Below are positions 19,401 through 61,738 of a DNA stretch of 64,000 nucleotides, piece by piece. Position 1 is the stretch's first letter; the number at the start of each line of letters is the position of its first letter. Made by a program: the position numbers and the translations under genes. The DNA comes from Podarcis muralis (lineage: Eukaryota): contig NC_135668.1 of NCBI RefSeq assembly GCF_964188315.1, forward strand, positions 30,194,001 to 30,258,000. Direction: 5' to 3'. The notes below the pieces were generated by a model. That model saw only the letters and a program-made list of their open reading frames with translations. It had not been told where the DNA came from and searched no databases.

Positions 19401-21829
19401 AGGTGCAGAGCTAGGGGTGGGTGGGTGGGTGGCTTTGGCTGGCTCCTCTTTGGGGCCATTGCCTTATGGGATCCAGGTGTTGCTGTCCTAGACCCAGGGA
19501 AAGAATAAGAAATGCAACAGCTGCAAAACTGGTTGGAAGCAGCAGGCAGAGAACTCAGTGACACAGGAGCTTTGGAGTCTTTGGAAAGTGGGCCAATGAG
19601 AAGGTTGTTAGCATCCAAAGGTGTCCTGCAGAGTGATAATAAGGCAATGCAAGCAAGTTAAAACAATGAGTCTTAGGAGTGTCAGGAGCCATCTTCTACT
19701 GAATCAGACTAGCCAGCTCAGCACTGTCTACACTGGCTGGCAGCAATAGCTCTCCAGTCTTCATTCAGGGGCCTTCCCAGCCATACCTGGAGAAGGGGCT
19801 TGAGATTGAACCTGGAACCTTCTACATGCCAAGCAGATGCTCTGCCATTGAGCCACAGCCCCTCCTGGTCTTAAAGTGTGCCATTCAGTATCCCTGCTTG
19901 GTATACAAATTCATTTTCCTGTATATGCTCACTGAGATTTACCTTTAAAGTATTGCACTGTCAATTGGACTTATTGACAGTGCCAGAGCAATCCTCCTGG
20001 GCACACGTGAACTCCAGATTACAGGGAAGCCTGTGGAGTCAGCCTGGAAAGCCCATCTCTGCTCACAGACAGGTGCCTATTATGCTACTTCCATAGCAGA
20101 CTGCTCAGCTGGCACGTCTCAGTGACAGGAATGTGCCCTCCCTTTCTAACCTATTGTGTGTTCCACAGTCTCAGGATGGGTGGCACAAAACTCTCTGAGG
20201 GCACAGAAACATTGCAACCCACAGCTGGTTTTCCCACAAGGGAGAAACCATGCATGAATTGTTTTATTTATTAACTGCAGTTAATATAAGAGGAGCTGCT
20301 CTAAAGTACAGCGTAGAACAGCAAAAAGAAATTACCAGTAAGAACTAAAACACCATCTTAGAAATTCTGTGTCACTGCCAGTTCATGACCCACAGCTGGC
20401 CCCAAGAGCTGGGTTGCTTGTTTTGCATATTTTGTCCAGCTGAACCAGAGACTGGTGGGTTGGTGGAAGCACGTTGGACCCTGAATGTGACGCCTGCCCC
20501 CCTCCAGCAGCAACAGATGGTACCTGAGCTTCCCAATCCCCTTAATCCCGCCTCCTGCAGGCTGTGCCCCTCACTCACTGCTCAAGGACCTGCTCAGGGA
20601 CAGCCTTGTGGGTGGGCCAAGCCTAGGGACTGACCCAGGACAATCCGGCTGCCCAGCCCCTCACCCATGCAGGCAACAGACCCTAGCTGCTTTCTGCTGG
20701 CAGAGGCTTGGGGTGAAGGGTCCAGTGAGATGGAAGAGGCAGGGAGTCCAGCTCATTGTGGGTAGGGAGACAGAGGGTTGCTGGGCATGTAGAGAGGGCC
20801 TAAGTAGGTAACACTCAACTTCCCTCTCCCCTACTCAGATTTGCTGCTGCTGCGGCCCAGCCCCTTGCACCTTGTGCTGCCCCTGCTGCCCCGGCATCAA
20901 GGTCTCGACGGGGACCCGGCTCCTCTACATGCTCTTCCACATCCTGGCCTGTGCCAGCTGCTGCTTCATGCTCTCCCGCACTGTGGCTGAAGCCATCAAG
21001 GAGAACGTGAGTGAGTGAGAAGCCACTGCCATTGGGAGCTTCCTCCACCTGCACCTGGAGGCTCATTGGGGTGGGGGGAGGGGAGGACAACTGGCCACTA
21101 TTCTGAGAAAATAATCTCTTCTAAGTGGCAGGGAGGGGCTTGAATGACCAGCTTCCTCTTATTAATTCACTTCCCTTTTAAAAATGCTATTACTCTAGTT
21201 CTATTTAAAAAGAGAAGAAAGCAGAGGGTGGGCTCTGCAAAGCAAACATTTTAATTCCACACTAAATAGTGGCACAGGGACGTGGGTGGTGCTGTGGGTT
21301 AAACCACAGAGCTTAGGACTTGCCGATCAGAAGGTCGGCGGTTCGAATCCCCGTGACGGGGTGAGCTCCCGTTGCTTGGTCCCTGCTCCTGCCAACCTAG
21401 CAGTTCGAAAGCACGTCAAAGTGCAAGTAGCTAAACAGGTACCGCTCCAGCAGGAAGGTAAACGGTGTTTCCGTGTGCTGCTCTGGTTCGCCAGAAGCAG
21501 CTTAGTCATGCTGGCCACATGACCCGGAAGCTGTATGCCGGCTCCCTCAGACAGTAAAGCAAGATGAGCCCAGAGTCGGCCACGACTGGACCTAATGGTC
21601 AGGGGTCCCTTTACCTTTACCTTTTAAATAGTGGCACAATGGTTAGCATGTTGGACTCGGACCAGGAATACAAGGGTTCAAATCCCTACTTGGCCATGAA
21701 GCTCACTGGGTGTGATTTGGGGGGGGCACATCTTGCCTCACAGGGTTTCTGTGGGGATTAAATGAGATGGGAAATAGCCATGCATGCTGCTTTGAGCTCC
21801 TTGGAGTGGCATAAAGTGGGATATAAATG

Positions 21830-35255: not shown

Positions 35256-38200
35256 TCAGCTTGGCTGGGGAGCAGGAGCATCTGTCTGCAAAAGATGGCA
35301 GTGAGGAGACACATGAGTTTTCACAGCCTCACAATTTCTTATTTATCTCTTACATTTTTTTCCACCTTTCCTCCAAGGAGCTCAAGGTGGCATACATCTC
35401 CACATTTTATTCTTACAACAACCCTGTGAGGTAGGTTAGGCTTGGAGGCAGTGACTGGCCAAAGGTCACCCAATAAGACTAATGGCTGAGTGGGGATTTG
35501 AATCTTGGTCTCCCAGGCCCTAGTCAGCACTCTAGCTAGTACACCACACTGGCCAAACAACATGCCCACAAAGGCAGCTGCCACAAGGCCACCGGAACAG
35601 TCTTGGGAACCAAACCCAGCAGCAACAGCAGCAGCCAGGATAAAGTGGCAGGAAGGCACCTGCTAAGTGACAAGGACCCTCAATCCTTTGCCGTAACTAG
35701 GCCGTGATAACAAACCTGAGCACTGTGAGCAATGGTGGGTGTTGCCATGTCTTCCGGAGTGGCCCCTCCTGGGCCAGGGCATTCCAGCTGCCCCCTCCGC
35801 CGCCTTGCTAGTTTGGAGAGCTCAGCATGGATGGCCTAGAGACAGCCAAGGTCTTTTTAATCCTTCTGGGGAGCAAATGGTTAATACACTCGGGAAAGGG
35901 GGGGGGGAATCACCTCCAGTGCCCCCTGAGCACCCTCCCACCAATGCTAGGAATATGATGCCATCTCAGTGTGAGCTGAGCAAAAGGGGAGATGCCAGTC
36001 GCAAGTGCTGAAAATGGCAGAGGATGAAGCTGGCCCAGCAAAGACGGACCTTCCCCACCACCTCTGCCATTGTCCCTTGCCTGTCTTTGCCCTGAGCGTG
36101 TCCTGTTGCCCCACCTTGGTAGTTGGCTCCAGCTGCAGGGCCCTCTTCAGAACGGCGGTGGCTGCCTGGTCCTCTCCCCGCTCTGACAACAGCTAAATAG
36201 CAGAGAGAGTGTGACAGAGATGGGGTGGTATATGAATTGGGTAGGGGTGGGGGAGCCTGCCTTTGTCCACCTCTTTCTCTGGCTGTTCTCTGCAGCTGTT
36301 CCTTGCCCCTCCCTCATGCCTTCTCTCACCTCTTGTGGTCACAACTCCCTTTCCCCCCATTTCAATCCAGACATAGCATTAGGTCAATATTGTGGAACAG
36401 GGACCTTTGCCACACACCCCCCACACACACTCTGGATCTCAGCCAGCTGTATGGCCTTCAGCATGCCGTTCCCTAGCCAAGTTCTTCCCTCCTGGCCCTG
36501 GAGCAGCTGAGGGGCTGGGAGGCGTTTCCCTCATCACCTTCCCTTTCCTGTAAAGTGCCTTGATGTTCTCTGGGTCAAGCTGTATAACTTCATTGCAGGA
36601 TGCCAGGGCCTCATCCAAAAGTTTCAGCTTCAGCTGGGCGGCTGCACAGTTGTTGAGGCATTTGACCCGATGGTCATGCAGCTCCTCTTCCTCCTCCTGG
36701 CTCAGGTAGTCTAGAGAGAAACCCACACAGGTGCAGCGTCACCCTCAGCCAGGAGGTGCAGCTGGGGCTGAGCCCCAGAACTGGGTTTCTGCGGTAGGGA
36801 TGGGTCAAGTGGGCCTTTGCAGGAGAGCACCTCTGGGACAGGGTTCCTCTCCCTTTTCATCCAAAGTGCCCAGATTTGGGCTCACAGCACTATTTCCAGG
36901 CAAGCTGCCCGTCAGCTCTAAATGAACCCTTGCCAACCCCATGTTTCCAGCACCCACCCACATGGCTGTGTTCTGAGGGCTTCATCCCCCAGTGCATCCC
37001 AAGCCCTCAGAACAGTGCCTCACCTGTCCCCGGCAGGGAGAGGACATGCAAAGCCTGCTGATAGGAGTGCAGGGCCTGCTGGTAGTCCCCCCGCTCAAAG
37101 TGGAAGTTGCCCCACTCCCGCTTCTGGTTGCCCAGGCTGAGGCGCTCCATGGTGGGCAACAGCGACAGGTCCGGGCTGTCCTGCACGTGCAGCAGAGTCA
37201 CCTCGTACAGCAACGTGGCATCTTTGGGAATATCTGGCTCTCTGCAGGAGGAGGAGGAGGAGAGGCCTCTGAGAACACACAGCTCTCTTCCCCCACCAAG
37301 GACCCAGATGTTGCCCCCCTCCCTGCCCACCAGTTACAGTGCAGAGCAAAGACTGATGACTACCTGCCCAAGTGACCGTAGGCACAAGCAGGGCCAGCGA
37401 GGAAAAGGGCTATTTCACCAAGCTGCATGGAGAGGACGCCAAGGTCCAAAGCCTAGGGAGAGAAAAAGGAAACAAGGACCTGACCCGAAGTGCCCCCCCC
37501 AATACACACACACACAAACAAACATATATCCTTCTGTCACACCTCTCAGCACCACTACATGCAAGAGTACATTGGCTTGGGCGCAACAGCCATTCTCACA
37601 TGGTCTGCATTGGCCTCTGCTATAATGGCGCACAGGTAGAAAAGGTGAGATCCTGTGTAGAGGGAGGGCCCTGTAAGCATGAGGTTGGGGGTGGCTGCAA
37701 AGCTGCCAGTCCTTTCCACTGAAACAGAACAGAAGCAGAACGACCAGGATTCTCCCCCATTGGTGGCATTCAGTTGCTCAGGCAACGGAGAGAAATGGGG
37801 GCTGAGAATGGGCTGCCCCTGTGGGACAGGCTGCCAGGCAAAGTCAGGGGGCAAGGAACAAGGGAGCCCCTGGGTTGCAGCCTTCCCACACCTTACCTGT
37901 ATTGCCTCCCCCTGGCCAAGGACAAAGGTGAGCTTTTGGTCCTTTTCCACCAGGCTGTGGTCCTCCAGGATTCCCAGCATCTTCACAGTAACCTCTTGGC
38001 CCAGTTGTGGCCAGTTGCCTCCCTCTGGACTGCTCTTCACCAGCCGCTTCCGTAGGGACTTGTCCTCTGGAGGGTGGAAAGGGGAGCATCAGTTCAACTA
38101 CAGGTGGAGGTGTTTGCTTGAGGAAGTGTGTGGAACTCCAACTGCCCAGGTGCAAAGGAAGGAAGGCCAAGGGAGTGCTGGATGATGAGGAAGTTACAGC

Positions 38201-39291
38201 CCCTCTCTCACAACACAACCTGCTCTGGCCAAATGGAGGGGCCTTTTCTCCCCACCATGAGGTACTGCAGTGTCCCACCTGCCCGGTTACCTCCAAATGC
38301 TCCTGGGCCAGGGTCTGATTTACGCCTAGGTGAAGTACACCACAGTTTAGGGCTTCAGGTGATGAAGGCCTCCAAATGCAAAAAAGGGACTAGTTTGTTT
38401 TCATTTGCCTTCTCTGTACTGATATCTATGCAGAAACAAAACATTTATTTCTCTCTTTGGCCTTCCCGATCTGTTAGACTAATATACTTTTGGGGGAAGG
38501 GGTAGAACAATGGGGCCTCTCAAACTTGGCAGAGCTGAGGGCATCAGAAGGTCTTAATGTGGTTCCCCACACCCACCAGTTTTTCTCCTACCTGGGGGGT
38601 AAAATCCACGTCACCCAGGACTTTAAGCATTTGCATTATGCTGCCTTCGTTTATCCTCTTATACCTTTTGATGCACCACCACACATTCTGTGGGGTGCTG
38701 AGGTGGGCATCAGTCAAGCCACTCCTCATTCTGATGCACCTCTAGAACCCCATGGGTGTGAGGGCAGACCCTGGTCTGGGTCGCTGAGGCGGGGGCAGGG
38801 GGCTTTCTGGCTAAGAGGCAGCGAACCCAGCAACCATCTCCTGTCTCCAGTGGCTTCTGGCTGTGGCGCTTGTTAGCCAGCGATGTCACCCCGTCCCCCA
38901 ATGACTGCCAGCAGAGAGGATCATGTAGGGTCTGAGAGTCCGAGCCGCCCTGTTGCCCCCAAGGCCCTCTGGGCAGCAGCAGGACCCTCCATCTCCTGGC
39001 CTGAAAGCCCCCTGCGCTCCGGGCCTCACCTCGGAGGTCCTCCCAGCCGTCAGCCGCAAAGAGCGCTGCAAAGCCGCCTCTTTCTCCTCCCAGCAAGCGC
39101 TCCAGCCGCTGGTAAAAGGCTCGCTCCTGAAGCTGGGGCGGGGGCTCCTGGATGATAGTGTGGGGCAGCAGGAAATGGACCCTCCGTCCAAGGTGGGGGC
39201 TGCCTCCCTCCAGCAGCACCGGCCCGAGGCTGGCGCCCGCCCCTTCACCTTCCTCCTCCTCCTCGCCCTGAAACATCTTGACCAGGAACAT
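35256..39291 (-). CDS. FKBP8(FKBP38)-family protein: acidic N-terminus, FKBP-type domain and 3 TPRs, ~379 aa (last exon uncertain)
   Basis: complement(join(35256..35285,35716..35835,36115..36192,36538..36710,37024..37241,37364..37452,37897..38066,39030..39291)) = 1140 nt in frame, with Kozak gccaccATG. Motifs GWEDL..LRKRLV, GQEVTV, LGQGEAIQALDLGV, IPKDATLLYEVTL, KREWGNFHF, KCLNNCAAAQLKL, NIKALYRKGK and AIHAELSKL parallel FKBP8. Confidence 0.88.
35395..35555 (-). mobile_element. Squam3-like tRNA SINE
   Basis: Reverse complement ggccagtgtggtgtactag...gattcaaatcccc...gtgacctttggccagtca. Confidence 0.75.
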
Positions 39292-40669
39292 GGTGGCCAG
39301 CTCCTCCGTCCTCGGAAGGGGCTTCCCGGAGCGAGGGGCTTTGCCGGCAGCCGCGCATCAGGATCTCGAGGGATTTGCTTCCCCGGCTTGCATGCGACGG
39401 TCGGAGCAGGCCGGCAGCGGCAGAAGCGAGAGGCCGCTTAGCCGTCTCTCCTTCCCTCAGTCTGCACTGAGCGCCTGTAATTCAATTATAGAGTAAGCCC
39501 CCCTACGCCCCAGCTGCGCTCAGGCTTACTTCCAAGGAGGATCTGGGCGTCAGGCTGCGGCTCAGGGATCAGCAGGGCCCCCTCCCGCATCTCAAGCGGG
39601 GCCCCTCCCTTTGGGCTGCCTTAATAAACCCAAGTAGATGCCTTCGCGTCTATAACAGAAGAGGCGGGGAGCAGCAACCCGCTGTTCACCCAGACGCGAC
39701 GGAAAAGGGGTTTTCCTCTTATACTACGCAAGGCCCCAAAGACTTGCGCTAAGAGGGAATACCTCTCGTGGATGAATGGGTTCCGCCCCATCTCCTGACA
39801 GGCTAGATTCTGAGAAAACTCAGTTGGCTTTGCCCTCTATCCCAATTCTCTCATGTAGGAACAGACCACCCAGAAGCAGAAGTGCCAACCTCAATAAAAC
39901 ATTGGGGGAGCAGGTAAGCCCCGCTCGCATAAATGATCACATGATGAGGTGCATGCACACTATTTGAATAGCATTGCCCATCAACTGTGGGGGAAGGCGG
40001 CCCCCGCAAATATTTTTTTGGGCGCTGAACACCCCTTGGCGCCTAGGAGTTTGCTCCTATGCCCATAAGTAAACGTCTATGAAGATCTTCTGGGCGAGGG
40101 AAGCCACTCAACCGAAGAGGCGCATCCGTCAGTCTTAGCGGTTCTTAGGGGATGCTGCCCCGCCCCAGATTATTGCCCGGTGACCTGCGGGGCTCTAAGC
40201 GGCTTAGTGGAGAGTCCCAAGAAGCACGTGGCCCCGCTGCACGTGGCCAAGCGTCCGGGGTCGGCTGCCGCGGGGGGCTTTGCAGTAGATGCGAGGCCCG
40301 CGGCCCAAAGGGAGGCCCAGCCCCGGGATCTCCGGTCTGGGGGACCGGGGACAATGGGCAGAAGCTCCCCCCGAAGACCTGGATAAGGGACCGGCCGTTC
40401 TTCCTCGGGGCAAACTGTTGAGGGGCTTGGTGGGTAATCGGCGGCGCCCTTCTTCTGGACGGGACGGCAGACTAAAGCTCCGAGGTCTCTTCTTGCTCCG
40501 AGCCTTTCCCACGCCCCAAACGGAGGCCGGTCTGGCCAGGCATCCCGGGCTGGGCACGCGCACCGGTTTGTGGAGCAGCAGCGGCTGCCGAGCAAGGAGC
40601 AGCGGCCCCGCCCCGCCGTCGAGCCCAAGTCCCGCCCAGGCGCCGCCGCCACAACCGCTCACTCCAGCG
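38900..40669. promoter_or_regulatory. CpG island holding the divergent promoters of the FKBP8-like gene and ELL3
   Basis: High CpG density. The start codons at 39291(-) and 40670(+) face away from each other, 1.38 kb apart. Confidence 0.7.
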
Positions 40670-43600
40670 ATGCCGCGGCGGGCGGCGGAGCGCCTTTCCT
40701 ACCGCCCCGGCTCGCGGGGCGCCCGCCTCAGCCTCTTCCACGTGAAACTGACCGACTCGGCCCTCCAGGCCTTGGTCGCCTACCAGCGGTGTCAGGTAAC
40801 GGGCTGGGTTGGAGGCGATTGCCGGACGGCCGGTCACTTGGCGGGAGGGGTGGTCTCACTGCCCGCTTTTTTTTCGGCAGGTGGCGGCGCCTCGTCCCGT
40901 GATCGCCTTCCAGGGCAGCCAAGGGGTAAGGATATTTCCCAGCACCGTGCATTGGGCAGGGGTCCTGTCGGGTCCCATCGCCGGGGCTGGGCAACGGAGG
41001 GGCGCCGTGGCCGTTGCTATCGCCGTGGGCGCCGCCTGCTTGCTAACGAGCTCCCCGCGGCTTTCTGCAAGGCGGCTAACGAGTCTCGCGCGAGTGGCAG
41101 AACGAGCCTGGAGTCCTCCCCGCGGAGTGCTCTGCTGTCTTGGCGCTGGAATGGGGCAGCCCGCCCCGTCGAAAGCCGCTTCTTTTTCGGGCTGAAAGTC
41201 CCCCTTAGTAGCAACGGAAGAGGGAAAGAGACGGGGCGGGCAGGAGCCGCGCCTTCGCTGCTCTGTAGGGGGAGCCCCGCCCACTCCCTTCCTGCGCAGG
41301 GCCAAGACTGACCCCTAGAAATGCAGCACCCCACAGTGTTTTTCACCCACGCAGAGCCAGACTCCACAGAAACAGCCCCCAGCCACATATCTAGGGTCAG
41401 GCCCTGCTCCTGAGGCCAAGGGGCCAGACCAGATCCCCACTCTGCTCTTTCTACGCTGTCCAGTATTTGAAGGTGCCCTGCGGTGCCACTGCCGGCCGTC
41501 GTGATCCACGGACTTTCCGCTTCACCTTCTACCTCTCACGCTATACGAAGGAGCAGCCGCAGGCCAGCTTCGATTGCGTCCGCCAGGCCAGTACCAGGTG
41601 AGCTGGCCCAGCCCAAAGACTATTTCCCTGGGGGGTTGGAATGGGGGAGAGAGGCTTCCCTGAACATTGCTCTTCTTTGCCCAGGTGGCTGGAGGGTAGA
41701 GGAGCCATCCAGGAGAAGATCACCATCTGTGCCATGGTTGTGGAGGCCTCCCAGTCCAGATGGGGTGTAGAGAGGTTGACCTGCTGTAGGGCAGCAGCTG
41801 CGTTCCCAAACCCAGGTGAGGAGAGAGGGGCAAGGGGCAGCAAGGGCTTCTTGGATAGGAGCTGAAGGGGGAATTGGCACAAATTGCCACCACCTCTCTC
41901 CCCTACCCACTTCCTGAAAGGAACAATTTGTGAGCGCTGCCATTCAGAGGTCTCTGGTTCTAACCTAGAATGTGTATATCCTAAGAAGCAGCTAGCAAAC
42001 TGTTTTTACTAACATGTGAATATAATGGAACAGTTTAGTTTGGTATCTTAACGAAAACATTATAACTAGTATAAAGCTACCCTGGATTTATGAAATCCTT
42101 CCATGTGTGAACCACCTTGAGATCTTTGGAGTAAGGGTGGTATACAAATTTAATAAGTGGATCTGAAGTGTAACATCCAAATTTCAGCTCAGTTGCTATA
42201 GACAATCACTGTGGAGGAAGAATGGAAACTGTCTTCTGCAATTAGTATTGGGGAGGGGGCAAGTAGCATTGGTGGCTACTGACAGCCAAGGCTGGCTCTG
42301 TTCCCTCACTCCCTTTGCCTTGACTTTCTGCTTTTCTGCACTGTAGAGACTGGCGCCCTCCTCCCAAGGAAAGCAGCCTCAGAGAGCCCCAGTGGGAAAG
42401 GCAAAGGAAGCAGTCCCCCAGCCAATGAGCCCCCATGGCCACCAATGCAGGTGCGGGAAGGAAGAGACCAGAGGGCTGAGAGGCTGTTGGGCTTCTTGGA
42501 GAGGCCACAACTGCAGGCTGAGGTAGGTCTGGGAGAGGCCGCTGGGCTTCCTCACCTTGCTGGAGCCTCCCTCACCACCTTTACCCCACAGACGGGGCAG
42601 CTGAGCCCCCCAGAAAGAAGTTACAGCTTGAAAGAAGACCGTCTGCAACCTAGAAAGGAGGCCTGGACAGGTGCTCTGCAGCAGCACCAGGAAGCATCTG
42701 AGCACTTGCGCAGGTAGAGCAATGAGTCCGGGAGTTAGACTACTGGGGAGGGATAGGGGATCCTTGTGGTTTTAGTCCTCATTCTCTCTCTCCCTCCCTC
42801 CCTAGCATAATCCTGTCTCTTTATGTGTGGGTGCATATTTGTTCCTACTATTCTGCTCTGCCATGGTCAGCTTTTAACAGCTCTCCTTCTACATCTGCAG
42901 GAAAGAGGCCCAGCAAGCTTTGGCCAAGCCCTTCCCAAGCCCTCCATCTGAAAAGTTTGCCCCTTCTCAAGGTGGTAGTCCTTTAAGAGCGGTGAGTCCT
43001 GCAATGGTGGTGCTTTAATTCAGAGTCCTGCAACAGTGCTTTAATTCAGAGCAGTAGCAGCGACAGCCGATGATGCCATGGCAAGGCTGTGGTTGCATCA
43101 CCCCCTCTGGGCAGCCTCTCCAATTCCCAGGCATTGCAGGCTCCTGTGGGCACAGGGGGAGGGGGAGACTTTCTTGTCTTGCATTTCTGCTGTTCTCATT
43201 TGCCTGCCTTTGTAAGCTACTGCATGGTGGTTTTCAGTTGGTCTTCCTGCCTAGAGGGAACCCTCATTATCCTGTTGTCCCTAGTATCCATTTGGCAGAT
43301 TAGACTGTAAGAGAGGGTTTAACATTTGCCATACTCAGACAGAGTGCTTTAAAGTGGACTGTGCCTGGAAAGAGTGAAGAGTGTGGATAAGCCCAGTCTT
43401 TATTTTTCAGAGACTACAACCTCTCCGAGCTGCACTTGGGCCAAGATCCAGGAGATGGCAGGGGCCTCACTTTACAGGAGCCGAGAGCAGCTGGTGGGGA
43501 CGCAAAATGCAGCCTGCAGCGGCAGTGAAGAGCAGGGCCCAGACCGACTGCAGTGACATCATAGGAGAGGTTCAGAGCTCGGATGAAGAACCTGAAGCAG

Positions 43601-44949
43601 GAAGTCATAGAACACCAGAGGTCGAGTGGCCAGAGGAGGAGGAGGAGAGGCAGGCAGGTGAGGAGTCTGGCAGATGCACTCCCAGCACGTCAAATATGAT
43701 GGCAACTGGAACCTCTGCAGTCTGCTCCTGACCTTGAGCAAAATGGAAAGCTCAGCCTTCCCAGTCTGGCAGACTGGTTTAAACCAGGAGGGACTTGTGC
43801 TATCACTTGGGCCTAAAAAGCTAGCTGTCTAGAACCACCTTCCCAATCTTCCAGGTGTTTTGGACTGCAGGCAACCCAGCAGTTGTGCTGATGGGAGGTA
43901 TATACCAAAATTTCCAGATGGCACGAGCCTGGGAAAGGATTGAACAACACACACTGGTGGGAGACGCTGGTGTCCAATGCAGGGCTGCAGGGCGACTGCT
44001 GCTACCACAATGACACTGCTTTTCCTTTTTCCCTCCCCAGACCATGCCAGCACCTCAGAGGAAAACCTCAAGTACTACTTGTAAGTATTTAGCTGCACTG
44101 CACACAAGGCAAGGACATTTTTCATAGGCCTCAGCCATTTGGGAACCAGCATCATTTTCACTGGTGCCCAGCCTTGTTGTACATTTGGTGTGGGGATCTC
44201 ATGCCTAGGGACCAAATGGAGCTTCTGGAAGACTGTCCATGCTGGAACACAATCCTTGGGACCAAAAAAGGTTCTACTCCTGATGTGGGAGATGGATTGG
44301 AGAGGTGGCTGCTGCTGTTGGCCTTCCCAACCAATACAGTGTTTGATACCTTGGGTCAAATTCCCCAAGGGAGGAGGCTCTCCCTTTCCATCTTCTGACT
44401 CGCATAATGTGTCTTTTGAAACTAGGAAATATGTCCCCATTTGCTCAGTAAAGCAGTACCGAGCCTACCAGGAGGACTTCAGTGCAGACTACACCACATA
44501 CCGCCACCTCCATGCCAGGATTGGGAGTGTGAGCAGAAGGTTTGCCCAGCTGGGCACAAGGCTTAGGCGAATGCAGCAAGGAACCAAGGAGTACAAGGTA
44601 ACTACAATCCAGGGAACAAAGGGGAAGGGACCTTCCCTGCCTGCTCCTGGGCTGAACTAGCTCTCTTGGGTTACAGGTCCTAGAAGATCAGATTTTGCAA
44701 GAATACAGGCACTTCAAAAAGGTGAGGCTGGAGCAGTGGGAACCCAGGCTGGCATCAGGGAGGGGGGTGCTTTCTTTCCCCCTGGTGGCTGAACTGTTTC
44801 CTTCTCTGCAGGTGTATCCTAACTACCAAGAAGAAAAGAGGCACTGCGAGTATCTGCACCACAAGCTCTCCCACATCAAGGCTCAAATCCTAAACTTTGA
44901 GCAGAATGTCCCTCCGGCTGGGCAGAGGGGCTGTGGCGAGAGGAGATGA
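40670..44949 (+). CDS. ELL3: RNA polymerase II elongation factor ELL3, ~488 aa, 12 coding exons
   Basis: join(40670..40795,40881..40925,41464..41597,41685..41815,42347..42522,42592..42713,42901..42991,43411..43657,44041..44080,44426..44597,44677..44721,44812..44949) = 1467 nt in frame. ELL N-terminal domain (LFHVKLTDSAL, PVIAFQGSQG) and occludin/ELL C-terminal domain (YRHLHARIG, EYLHHKLSHIK). Position between SERF2 and PDIA3 identifies it as ELL3. Confidence 0.9.
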
Positions 44950-46212
44950 TGAGGGCAGCATCACCTGCAACTCCTCACAGCAAGCACAGGGGGGCTCTAG
45001 TGTTTCATTACAACTGCTTGCTCTTGGAGTGAGTTTTGTACTGCTTAAGAACAGGCCCGGCTTACAGTACGTTCCTCTTATGTTTTGGTCCAAGTCTGCT
45101 CTGCAACATCTTGCTAGCTGAAAGCAATTTGAAAAGAAACACTTAAAGCAGGGCGGGGGTGCTCCCTTTCCCCCATCCTTCTGTAGCAACTTGTTTGTGG
45201 CAGCCTAAAGTTACTTCAAGCTATCCACAACCAGAGCAGCCATCTTTGGCTTGAAACAAAGCTGTGCTTTAGAATTGTTTCATAGTCAGCAAGTATATTC
45301 TTGTGCCTTAGATTGGAAAAACTGGAGTGTGGGTAGTCTTGCATTTTTAGATAAGACGAATCTCAATATGCTAACACTTAGCCTGTCCAACTCCAGTTGA
45401 CATTTGTTCAGACACTCACACCCAAGGCAGTAGGAACTTTGCTAGAAACCTTTTCTTCAAGGAATACTTTAATCTTGCCTGGCTTATGCTGCTTTGTTTT
45501 CAAAGTTTCTAGTGGCTGCAGAGACAGGTCTTTGTCACACAGGCTTAAAGCTTGGCACCTACCACATCTCTCAGAGATGCTCCACATGAGAAGTTATACA
45601 AAAAATTGCATTTTGTGAAGATCGTTTAAACAGACATGCCATCTCCCTTCGTATCAATCAGTTATGTTATCAATCTGCTACATGTTCATTTGACAATGCT
45701 GCTTAGGCCCATCTGCAGAGCTAGGCTATCCCAAGCTAAAATCAACATGCAAACTTCTCATGGACAGCTGAGTTGTTCAGTAACTTCTATGGGGAACAAA
45801 AGTTCTCTGGCAGAGCAGCCTCCCAAGCTAGCAAAGTACCAGAAACAGGTAAATGTATCCCGCTCAAAGAGACAGGGAGAAGTCTTTCCCCTCCCATCAT
45901 CACAGAAAGGCAATTTGGGGCCTAAGGGGGTCATTTATTGATTCACTTCTTCAAATGTACAAAAAATTAGAAAACAAACCCTCCCCCTCCCCACCCACAA
46001 ATATCAGCCAGTCCAGGGCATTCAAGGCCAGTGCAGTTAAGAGATGAGGGGGCAGGAAATTAAACAGAACAGCAGCAGCAGCTGGGTCCCCTCTGCTCAA
46101 TGTGGCTTCACTTTCCAACAGCTTAGACTGCCCCACAGGGCCCCACCTCCAGGAGTGGCCATGGGCTCTTCTGCAGACAAGGGCGATGATGACACCAAGC
46201 CCCCCTCCCCGC

Positions 46213-60096: not shown

Positions 60097-61738
60097 TCAG
60101 CCCAAGAAGCGCAGGCCAGCCATCCCTGAGAAACCCAGCAGCACAGCAAGGACTTTGAGCAGGCGCCTGGCAGGATCGTTCAGCTCCTGAGGCAAGATTT
60201 CCAGGAAGGTGATGTACATGAAGGTCCCGGCAGCCACGCCTTCCAGCACACTCCGGGTCATGGTGGGACTGCCGCTTGCATCAGGACTCTGCATCACAGC
60301 CATGCCCAGCCCCACACCCAGAGGGGACATCAGCGCGAAGGTGATGATGGAGGCTGCCAGCCAGCGCAGGGGGAGGCGGCTCTGGAGCAGCAGCAGGGCC
60401 AAGCTGGCAGCGATGATGGTCTTGTGGAGGAGAATGGCCACAGCCAGCTGGAGGACCTTTGATTCTGTGTCTTGCAGGCCCACCGCCAGGCCCTCAAACA
60501 CTGAGTGGAAGGAGAGAGAGAGGGTCAGCACCAGGGAGCGGAAGGACGAGGGTGCTTTGGTGTCCCCCGTGTGGCAGTGGGGGGTCCCCGCCTCCAAGCG
60601 CGGCTGCTGCTGCTGCTCAGCCAGGCTGCCCTCTTCGCCGTGTGGGGGAGAGGGGCAAGGCAAGAGGGGCAGGGAGGCCTCATCCCCCTGCTGCTCGCTG
60701 CAGGCCAGGATGATGTGCTCTAGGACCAGGACCAGCAGGAAGCCCAGCGCCAGGACCAGTTCGGGCATCGGGAAGTCCAGCTGTGGGGCAGGGAAGAAAA
60801 GGGAGGCACCATCAGGTTAGGAGAGAAACCGTTCCCTCGAGGCCCCGACACCCACCCAAGGGCGTCTCCCCTGGAGCCAGGAGAGCCAAACCACCAAAGG
60901 AGCTCCAGAGCCTCTGGGCTCCTGAGAATTCTTCCCCAGAGCTGCAACAACCCCTATCTTGGGAATTAAACAGGAAAGGTTTCAGGTAAATGAATGCTTG
61001 GCTACTGCTTTCAGAAGGTCACAGGGCAGCCCTGGTGTGCTTAATATGGAGGGGAGGTAAGCAGCCCATTTGAAGACCACCTAACCTTTCCCACAGGGCA
61101 TGGGGCAAATCTGAGAGCAACTCAGGCCTTTGTCCAGTCAACATCTCGCGGCCTCTTCCCTGCACCATCAAGCATAGGAGCGTGTGAGTCAGCTTAGCCC
61201 CATCACATGCTGTCTCGCAAAAGCTGGGCGGGCAGGGCCAGCGGGACTCCGGCGACCAGCAGCGCCAGCAAGATGTTCGCTGGAGCCCCCCTCCCCACTT
61301 TTAGTTCGGGGGCTGCAGCCCGTGATGCGGCTCCAACCCTCCGGGCCCGGTCACAGTGTCCTGATCCCCCGCCCTACTCTTCCCTGCTCGGTACCGGGGG
61401 AATCTGTTGGCTCAGGTCCTCGCGCAGGTCGGCCAGCGAGTCCGGCACGATGTCCAGCAGGCAAGCGGACAGGAAGACGCCACCGGCTGCGCAGCTCAGG
61501 ACGCCCCGCCAGCGCGCAAAGAAGCCTGCGGAGGGAGAAAGAAAAGCGGGCGCTGAGAGGGGGGGGGGGAGGAGCCCGGCCGCGACCCGCGCCCAGCTCT
61601 GCCCTGCTCTCTCCCTCACTCACCGGTCCCGCCAGCCCCCCGGAGGCTGAGAAGGACGGCAGGCAGGAGGCCGCAGAGAAGCGGCAGCAGCGCCAGCCCC
61701 AGCAGGCAGCCCAGCTTCAGAACCTGCAGCGAGCCCAT
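60097..61738 (-). CDS. ZIP (SLC39A) subfamily II zinc transporter, ZIP1/2/3-like, 309 aa, 3 exons
   Basis: complement(join(60097..60780,61395..61525,61624..61738)) = 930 nt in frame. Motifs CAAGGVFLSACLLD, TM4 LSFHSVFEGLAVGLQ, TM5 LLHK, and GTFMYITFLEILPQEL. Confidence 0.92.

Follow-up and report, generated by a model that had tools for sequence, protein, structure and literature searches.

Organisation and expression of the FKBP16 gene

The window analysed here, a stretch of 64,000 nucleotides of Podarcis muralis contig NC_135668.1, carries MFAP1 (+), HYPK (-), SERF2 (-), FKBP16 (-), an ELL-family gene (+), PDIA3 (-) and a ZIP transporter gene (-), in that order. The gene under study is FKBP16, an eight-exon gene on the minus strand whose coding sequence runs from an ATG at 39291 to the end of a TGA at 35256 and whose product of 379 amino acids contains no internal stop. 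We conclude, with a probability of roughly 85%, that it is the lacertid orthologue of vertebrate FKBP16, the sister paralogue of FKBP8 (FKBP38), that it has retained its position between ELL3 and SERF2, and that it is missing from the annotated mammalian proteins. Public (RefSeq) annotation already contains the gene with its exon structure and family name, and no new gene is described here. Full-text literature searches nevertheless returned no study of vertebrate fkbp16 or of 'FKBP8-like', the term 'fkbp16' yielding only plant FKBP16s and an AIP alias.

The coding region (35256-39291, minus strand) is defined by the exon model, by its identity to the Podarcis raffonei gene and by splice joints in RNA contigs. 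All of its introns are GT-AG, and the exon count, coordinates and protein length match exactly those given earlier from the letters of the window (hereafter the sequence-only reading). Exon 1 (39030-39291; intron 1 joint 38066/39030 in run X1) encodes a disordered, Glu-rich N-terminus with an RVxF-like motif and two predicted helices (residues 54-79); the codons of this FKBP16-specific RVxF-type motif, R36-R-V-H-F40, which is followed by LLP..II, lie at 39172-39186, and the motif counts are reported below. Exon 2 (37897-38066), with joints on both sides, contains the first half of the FKBP domain, and exon 3 (37364-37452), whose intron 3 joint was found in three runs, its middle, with 'IQALDL' at the position of the canonical active-site Trp. 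Exon 4 (37024-37241) encodes the end of the FKBP domain, the linker and the first tetratricopeptide repeat (TPR1) with the clamp residues R215 and N219, while the codon of R174 is split by intron 3 (residue mapping according to PMC5344419). Exon 5 (36538-36710; TPR_1 at 32 bits as a single exon) encodes TPR2-3 with K263, N266, N267, N295, K297, R301 and K304, exon 6 (36115-36192; joints in runs X5 and X6) the end of TPR3, and exon 7 (35716-35835; joints 35835/36115 and 35285/35716) the TPR capping helix 'AIHAELSKL' followed by a Pro/Gly-rich tail. The coding part of exon 8 (35256-35285; joint 35285/35716 in run X5) adds nine residues and the stop; it is a terminal exon of the squamate type, occupying the place of the membrane-anchor exon of other vertebrates.

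The 5' end of the gene is CpG-rich over 39000-39750 (GC 0.61-0.65, CpG observed/expected 0.66-0.73), which fits the CpG promoter proposed earlier. The start codon, in the context GCCACCATGT, had been described as a perfect Kozak site; its upstream part does fit the consensus, but position +4 is T rather than G. Downstream of the stop, the 3' untranslated region (34648-35255) reaches at least to 34648, as indicated by contig pieces covering 34648-35287 (run X1) and 34865-35261 (run X6), and neither AATAAA nor ATTAAA occurs within 1 kb of the stop. A single contig of run X5 also displays an optional intron in this region (35184-34773, GT..AG on the minus strand, joint 34772/35185), which is unspliced in the other contigs. 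Intron 7 of the gene houses an element resembling a short interspersed nuclear element (SINE; 35340-35545), where contig depth rises to 280-400 and joints and loose ends cluster at the borders.

Contigs from three runs belonging to three studies contain splice joints at the exact predicted borders of introns 1, 2, 3, 5, 6 and 7. For intron 4, no joint was present among the matches listed, and one contig piece corresponds exactly to 37024-37241, the borders of exon 4. Of the words sampled from the stretch, each of the three contig runs contains approximately a fifth, the share expected for messenger RNA; together with the exon-exon joints, this word share of about 20% fits transcriptomes. FKBP16 is expressed and correctly spliced, weakly in the sampled runs, with some contigs retaining introns. 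The joints at six of the seven introns thus answer the earlier question of transcription, and they do so against a pseudogene.

Comparison with the P. raffonei locus revealed 17 synonymous and six non-synonymous differences, corresponding to a synonymous divergence (dS) of 0.065, a non-synonymous divergence (dN) of 0.007 and a dN/dS of 0.108, while the introns differ by 4.4%. The coding sequence is clearly under purifying selection. Hence, on account of its open frame, its spliced transcripts and the purifying selection on its coding sequence, we regard FKBP16 as functional.

FKBP16 as the sister paralogue of FKBP8

Over its full length of 379 residues, the window protein shares 98.4% identity with the P. 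raffonei RefSeq protein 'peptidyl-prolyl cis-trans isomerase FKBP8-like isoform X1' (P0168). Single exons of the window gene give weak, sub-threshold Pfam matches, and whole-protein scores were taken from P0168 rather than from the spliced window protein: FKBP_C scores 59 bits (cut-off 21.1; residues 107-191) and TPR_1 62 bits, both above the curated cut-offs. The FKBP-plus-TPR architecture claimed for the gene is therefore well founded, with an FKBP domain and three TPRs as in FKBP38. Among natural proteins of solved structure, exon 4 alone finds human FKBP8 best (1.7e-12, versus 2e-4 for FKBP5), and the best solved relative of the window protein is again FKBP8, at 212 bits versus 120-140 bits for FKBP4/5.

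Relatives were gathered by an exhaustive search with exon 4, by cluster look-ups and by a word search with the best full-length match, and the best 120 of a length close to that of the query were listed. The annotation calls these 120 (all with E < 1e-76) 'FKBP8-like' or, where they come from fish or cartilaginous fishes, 'FKBP prolyl isomerase 16'. They derive from squamates, turtles, alligator, many birds, frogs, salamanders, coelacanth, gar, bowfin, sturgeon, teleosts, sharks, a ray and a chimaera. In Anolis and Pogona the RefSeq name is plain 'FKBP8'.

A maximum-likelihood tree (IQ-TREE, LG+C20+F+G4; 55 rows, 444 columns) was built from the spliced window protein, 36 FKBP16-type proteins, 11 ray-finned FKBP8 proteins and seven invertebrate FKBP8 proteins. 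FKBP16 forms one clade (100/100) and FKBP8 another (100/100), and the two together stand apart from invertebrate FKBP8 (99/98). Within the squamates (100/99), the window gene has that of P. raffonei as its sister, and branching inside the FKBP16 clade, which spans chimaera to birds, roughly follows the species tree. One oddity is that bird FKBP16 groups with squamates (96/86) and not with the alligator; the bird stem is long (0.78), the rows were flagged for composition bias, and the grouping is probably an artefact, which coincides with the loss of the tail anchor common to both groups. The topology places the split between FKBP16 and FKBP8 after the amphioxus lineage had diverged and before the divergence of cartilaginous and bony fishes.

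When lizard FKBP16, moray FKBP8 and gar FKBP8 were used as queries, the matches listed were all either FKBP16 or FKBP8 of ray-finned fishes. Gar FKBP8 reaches 371 bits against the human FKBP8 chain 5MGX_E, compared with 212 bits for lizard FKBP16, and on this basis human FKBP8 is of the FKBP8 type. The window gene, whose clade is separate from ray-finned FKBP8, is not the orthologue of human FKBP8 as placed by these scores against the PDB chain.

None of the 120 best relatives is mammalian, although every other jawed-vertebrate class is present among them. This absence from the annotated proteins is indirect evidence that FKBP16 was lost in mammals. It agrees with one half of the sequence-only reading, in which the gene had been kept in squamates and lost in mammals; the other half was too narrow, as FKBP16 has been kept in all non-mammalian jawed-vertebrate classes sampled.

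Head to head with FKBP16 lies the ELL-family gene (40670-44950, plus strand; ELL3 by position), in which Pfam recognises ELL and Occludin_ELL (near 44900), and its ATG at 40670 is approximately 1.4 kb from that of FKBP16, an arrangement also annotated in P. raffonei. Downstream, on the same strand as FKBP16, is SERF2 (30554-31662, minus strand; Pfam SERF-like_N). The order in P. raffonei is PDIA3, ELL (-), FKBP16 (+), a 62-aa gene without a Pfam match at the place of SERF2, and Serinc (-), and in the goshawk PDIA3, FKBP16, SERF2 and Serinc. FKBP16 is followed by SERF in both Xenopus tropicalis and the elephant shark (a chimaera), and zebrafish has ELL (-), FKBP16 (+) and SERF (+). Chimaera, zebrafish, frog, hawk and lizard all retain the ELL/FKBP16/SERF2 synteny, wholly or partly.

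In gar, a different ELL gene is located 4.3 kb downstream of FKBP8 on the same strand. FKBP16 and FKBP8 therefore both adjoin ELL paralogues, as block duplication predicts, and we infer that the pair arose by whole-genome duplication. The earlier proposal of an ohnologue is upheld insofar as the gene is an old FKBP8 paralogue at the ELL3-side locus and both copies sit beside ELL genes, while the mode of duplication, whole-genome or segmental, is the inferred part of that claim. FKBP16 and ELL3 are head to head, whereas FKBP8 and ELL are in tandem in gar, and a simple block duplication therefore needs the added inversion of one copy; this counts against our interpretation. An old small-scale (segmental) duplication of the ELL-FKBP8 block, separate from the vertebrate whole-genome duplications, would accommodate the differing orientations at the two loci, and the tree dates the split only to the interval from the divergence of amphioxus to the jawed-vertebrate ancestor. 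We nonetheless consider such an event improbable, as both copies lie beside ELL paralogues, the timing is that predicted by the first and second rounds of vertebrate genome duplication (1R/2R), and SERF2, SERINC4 and PDIA3 have known paralogues elsewhere.

Several observations on the neighbouring genes deserve mention. An ATG-started open frame at 40289-40670 (plus strand) is in frame with the first exon of the ELL gene, and this upstream start is apparently the one used in the RefSeq ELL model of P. raffonei (724 aa), in which case the start codons of ELL and FKBP16 would be separated by only about 750 bp. In the gene models of the birds Pipra filicauda (P0194) and Zosterops borbonicus (P0225), FKBP16 is fused with the downstream SERF2; one model bears the name 'small EDRK-rich factor 2 isoform X1', and in the second Pfam finds SERF. 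Because FKBP16 and SERF2 are only about 500 bp apart in the goshawk, these fusions are likely read-through transcripts or annotation artefacts.

Elsewhere in the window, all four runs cover the segment 33800-34187 very deeply, with contig depths of hundreds to thousands and 40-80 reads in the raw RNA run. Fixed mismatches are numerous here and loose ends at 34089/34090 are diverse, the behaviour of an interspersed repeat with transcription from many loci; an Rfam scan of this segment returned no match. The only Rfam match of the window is a tRNA (34.6 bits, gathering score 29) at 19794-19862 on the minus strand between HYPK and SERF2, representing either a tRNA gene or the tRNA-derived head of a SINE. 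Upstream of PDIA3, a long open exon at 60100-60816 (minus strand) matches the Pfam family Zip (zinc transporter) with 160 bits.

Hsp90 clamp, FKBP domain and membrane anchor

An AlphaFold model based on a 40-sequence alignment has a mean predicted local distance difference test score (pLDDT) of 83, with values above 90 in the domains. Its top Foldseek match is 5MGX, the structure of human FKBP38 with the Hsp90 MEEVD peptide (target template-modelling (TM) score 0.92, root-mean-square deviation (rmsd) 2.0 Å over 264 columns, 45% identity). In the FKBP38-MEEVD structure, the contacts are made by R225, N229, K273, N276, N277, N305, K307, R311 and K314, and the exchange K307E abolishes Hsp90 binding (PMC5344419). 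A gap-free alignment to human FKBP8, with an offset of ten residues, reveals that all of these are kept in the window protein, as R215, N219, K263, N266, N267, N295, K297, R301 and K304. Six of the nine are invariant and two at least 90% conserved across the 40 aligned sequences, which comprise FKBP16, FKBP8 and invertebrate FKBP8; the list of conserved columns includes neither K304 nor R174. The clamp had been proposed to be intact and indeed is, although the basic residue of TPR1 is the Arg of 'KREWGN' (R215) and not the preceding Lys (PMC5344419).

It is thus likely that the TPR domain binds the C-terminus of Hsp90, and by analogy with FKBP38 the intact carboxylate clamp of the three-TPR domain would grip the C-terminal MEEVD. 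The helix 'AIHAELSKL', which had been matched to the calmodulin-binding region of FKBP8, is the capping helix that closes the TPR domain; the calmodulin site of FKBP8 has been described only as 'downstream of the TPR domain' (PMC5344419). The sequence after the capping helix is unconserved between the window protein and FKBP8.

The FKBP domain shares with FKBP38 the 'IQALDL' stretch, in which Leu occupies the position of the pocket Trp of canonical FKBPs. FKBP38 has no constitutive isomerase activity, which has been attributed to R184 occluding the pocket (PMC5344419), and this residue corresponds to R174 of the window protein. Neither constitutive prolyl isomerase activity nor binding of FK506 is expected of such a domain, which may instead serve as a regulatory or interaction module. 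One could argue, from a Pfam FKBP_C score well above threshold and a confidently predicted fold that superposes on FK1 domains at a TM score of 0.85, that FKBP16 is an active prolyl isomerase and drug-binding immunophilin in which catalysis, rather than scaffolding by the TPRs, is the main function. The FKBP38-type substitutions, including the Leu at the pocket Trp position, the retention of the Arg said to occlude the FKBP38 site and the lack of constitutive activity in FKBP38 itself (PMC5344419) make this quite unlikely.

The lizard protein differs from its relatives at the C-terminus, where its maximum 19-residue hydropathy is 0.08 and a short Pro/Ala tail takes the place of the anchor. A C-terminal hydrophobic tail is what defines FKBP8 as a mitochondrial/ER (endoplasmic reticulum) membrane protein, and we scored this feature in protein models across the two families. 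It is present in all seven invertebrate and all seven ray-finned FKBP8 models, and in the FKBP16 models of ray-finned fishes (17/17), cartilaginous fishes (6/7), coelacanth (1/1), amphibians (20/21) and alligator (1/1). Only three of the ten turtle models possess it, and it is absent from the FKBP16 of squamates (0/15) and birds (0/33).

In the window, the short squamate-type last exon is backed by an RNA joint, and a tblastn search of 32000-36200 revealed no recognisable remnant of an anchor exon (best E ~2-3). One candidate remnant in intron 7, 'ILAAAVAAGFGS' (35641-35606), was rejected as its E value of about 3 is not significant. With no tail anchor, lizard FKBP16 is predicted to be soluble, and the squamate protein would be expected to work in the cytosol as a soluble adaptor, away from the mitochondrial and ER membranes. 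Mapped on the species tree, the distribution of the tail indicates that sauropsids lost the anchor on at least two occasions. As far as our literature searches show, its loss in squamates and birds is apparently unreported; this is a modest observation that rests in part on automatic gene models.

Besides the orientation relative to ELL, a number of points weigh against our interpretation of the gene. Expression of FKBP16 is low, with contig depths of 2-13 and a raw RNA run that has almost no reads in its exons, and the RNA nature of the three contig runs is a guess. The tree contains no tetrapod FKBP8, FKBPL, FKBP6, lamprey or hagfish sequences, and the absence from mammals is known from protein databases only. 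Furthermore, the loss of the anchor rests mostly on automatic gene models, and an unannotated alternative last exon is possible in other species.

Very low expression in the sampled runs, together with the lost ancestral anchor and the absence of a canonical poly(A) signal near the stop, could also point to a decaying, non-functional relic that is disappearing from lizards as it did from mammals. We judge this to be very unlikely in view of the open frame with canonical splice sites throughout, the dN/dS of 0.11 with just six replacements at 6.5% synonymous divergence, the fully intact clamp residues and the maintenance of the anchor-less architecture across squamate families. That the gene is instead a recent squamate duplicate of FKBP8, as its RefSeq label 'FKBP8-like' (and 'FKBP8' in Anolis and Pogona) might imply, or an orthologue of FKBPL or FKBP6, is highly improbable: the FKBP16 and FKBP8 clades are separate at 100/100 each, so that the gene does not nest inside FKBP8, orthologues extend from chimaera to birds, synteny has been conserved since the cartilaginous fishes, a split before the divergence of cartilaginous and bony fishes rules out a recent duplicate, and FKBP8 is by far the closest solved protein. 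FKBPL and FKBP6, which were not included in the tree, are both absent from the 60 best solved chains, FKBP8 being first, which argues against orthology with either; the close relatives are all named FKBP8-like or FKBP16.

N-terminal motif, significance and known systems

The N-terminus of FKBP16 carries a motif of the form [RK]x[VI]xF followed by LP, represented in the window protein by RRVHF-LLP (residues 36-43), and two confidently predicted helices (residues 54-79) follow it. Of 113 FKBP16 N-termini, 108 contain this motif, against 13.5 predicted by shuffling, and of 136 FKBP8 N-termini one does; since the sequences are related, these counts reflect conservation and not independent recurrence. 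RVxF motifs are degenerate and common by chance. In the window protein, RRVHF (36-40) falls in a disordered region (pLDDT < 50) and is followed six residues later by the hydrophobic pair II (46-47). This agrees with the RVxF form, in which [RK]-x-[VI]-x-[FW] lies within a disordered segment and a hydrophobic pair comes 5-8 residues later. The arrangement is that of the RVxF-PhiPhi docking motifs for protein phosphatase 1 (PP1) (PMC10731240).

Whether this resemblance extends to function is doubtful, and we think it improbable that the motif docks PP1. Were it to do so, FKBP16 might bridge PP1 to Hsp90 and its clients, as an adaptor that was released from the membrane independently in squamates and birds when the tail-anchor exon disappeared and that was lost as a whole in mammals, a speculative scheme to which we attach equally little weight. 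The RVxF-like motif of FKBP16 is itself apparently unreported, as far as the literature searches show, and we regard it as a modest observation. The N-terminus is longer in the salamander models (P0007, P0196, P0009 and P0155; 675-710 aa), which have an extension of about 300 residues that is absent from other vertebrates.

FKBP16 represents a vertebrate immunophilin family that has been conserved for more than 400 million years, has a complete Hsp90-binding clamp and is missing from the annotated mammalian proteins. The evolutionary part of the sequence-only reading was right, but it is largely implicit in the existing nomenclature. FKBP8 has roles in the control of Bcl-2 and mTOR, in mitophagy and in Hedgehog signalling. 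If FKBP16 shares these roles, studies of fkbp8 in zebrafish, frog and chicken may be buffered by FKBP16. With its anchor lost more than once, in squamates and in birds, the family would furthermore provide a natural experiment on tethering in such co-chaperones.

The closest known system is the FKBP16 of other non-mammalian vertebrates, with which the window gene shares its clade (100/100), the eight-exon, 379-aa structure, the ELL3-SERF2 position and the N-terminal [RK]x[VI]xF-LP motif. Nothing sets it apart from the other squamate members, whereas the FKBP16 proteins of fish, frog, turtle and alligator carry the C-terminal membrane anchor that is lacking in the window protein.

Human FKBP8/FKBP38 (PDB 5MGX, 2AWG and 3EY6) resembles the window protein, at approximately 41-45% identity, in its Glu-rich N-terminus, non-canonical FKBP domain, three TPRs, full clamp and capping helix. 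In contrast to FKBP8, the window gene belongs to a separate paralogue clade at another locus and its product has no tail anchor; at its N-terminus it has a structured segment of helices and an RVxF-like motif, both absent from FKBP8, and the 'YRKMLGNP' stretch that precedes the anchor in FKBP8 has no counterpart in the window protein. FKBP51 and FKBP52 (FKBP5 and FKBP4) differ further, having two FK domains of which the first is active, 25-29% identity and another arrangement of domains (rmsd 6-8 Å over the whole model). They are, however, likewise soluble FKBP-plus-TPR proteins that bind the MEEVD of Hsp90, and theirs is the working mode that would be expected of the anchor-less FKBP16 of squamates.

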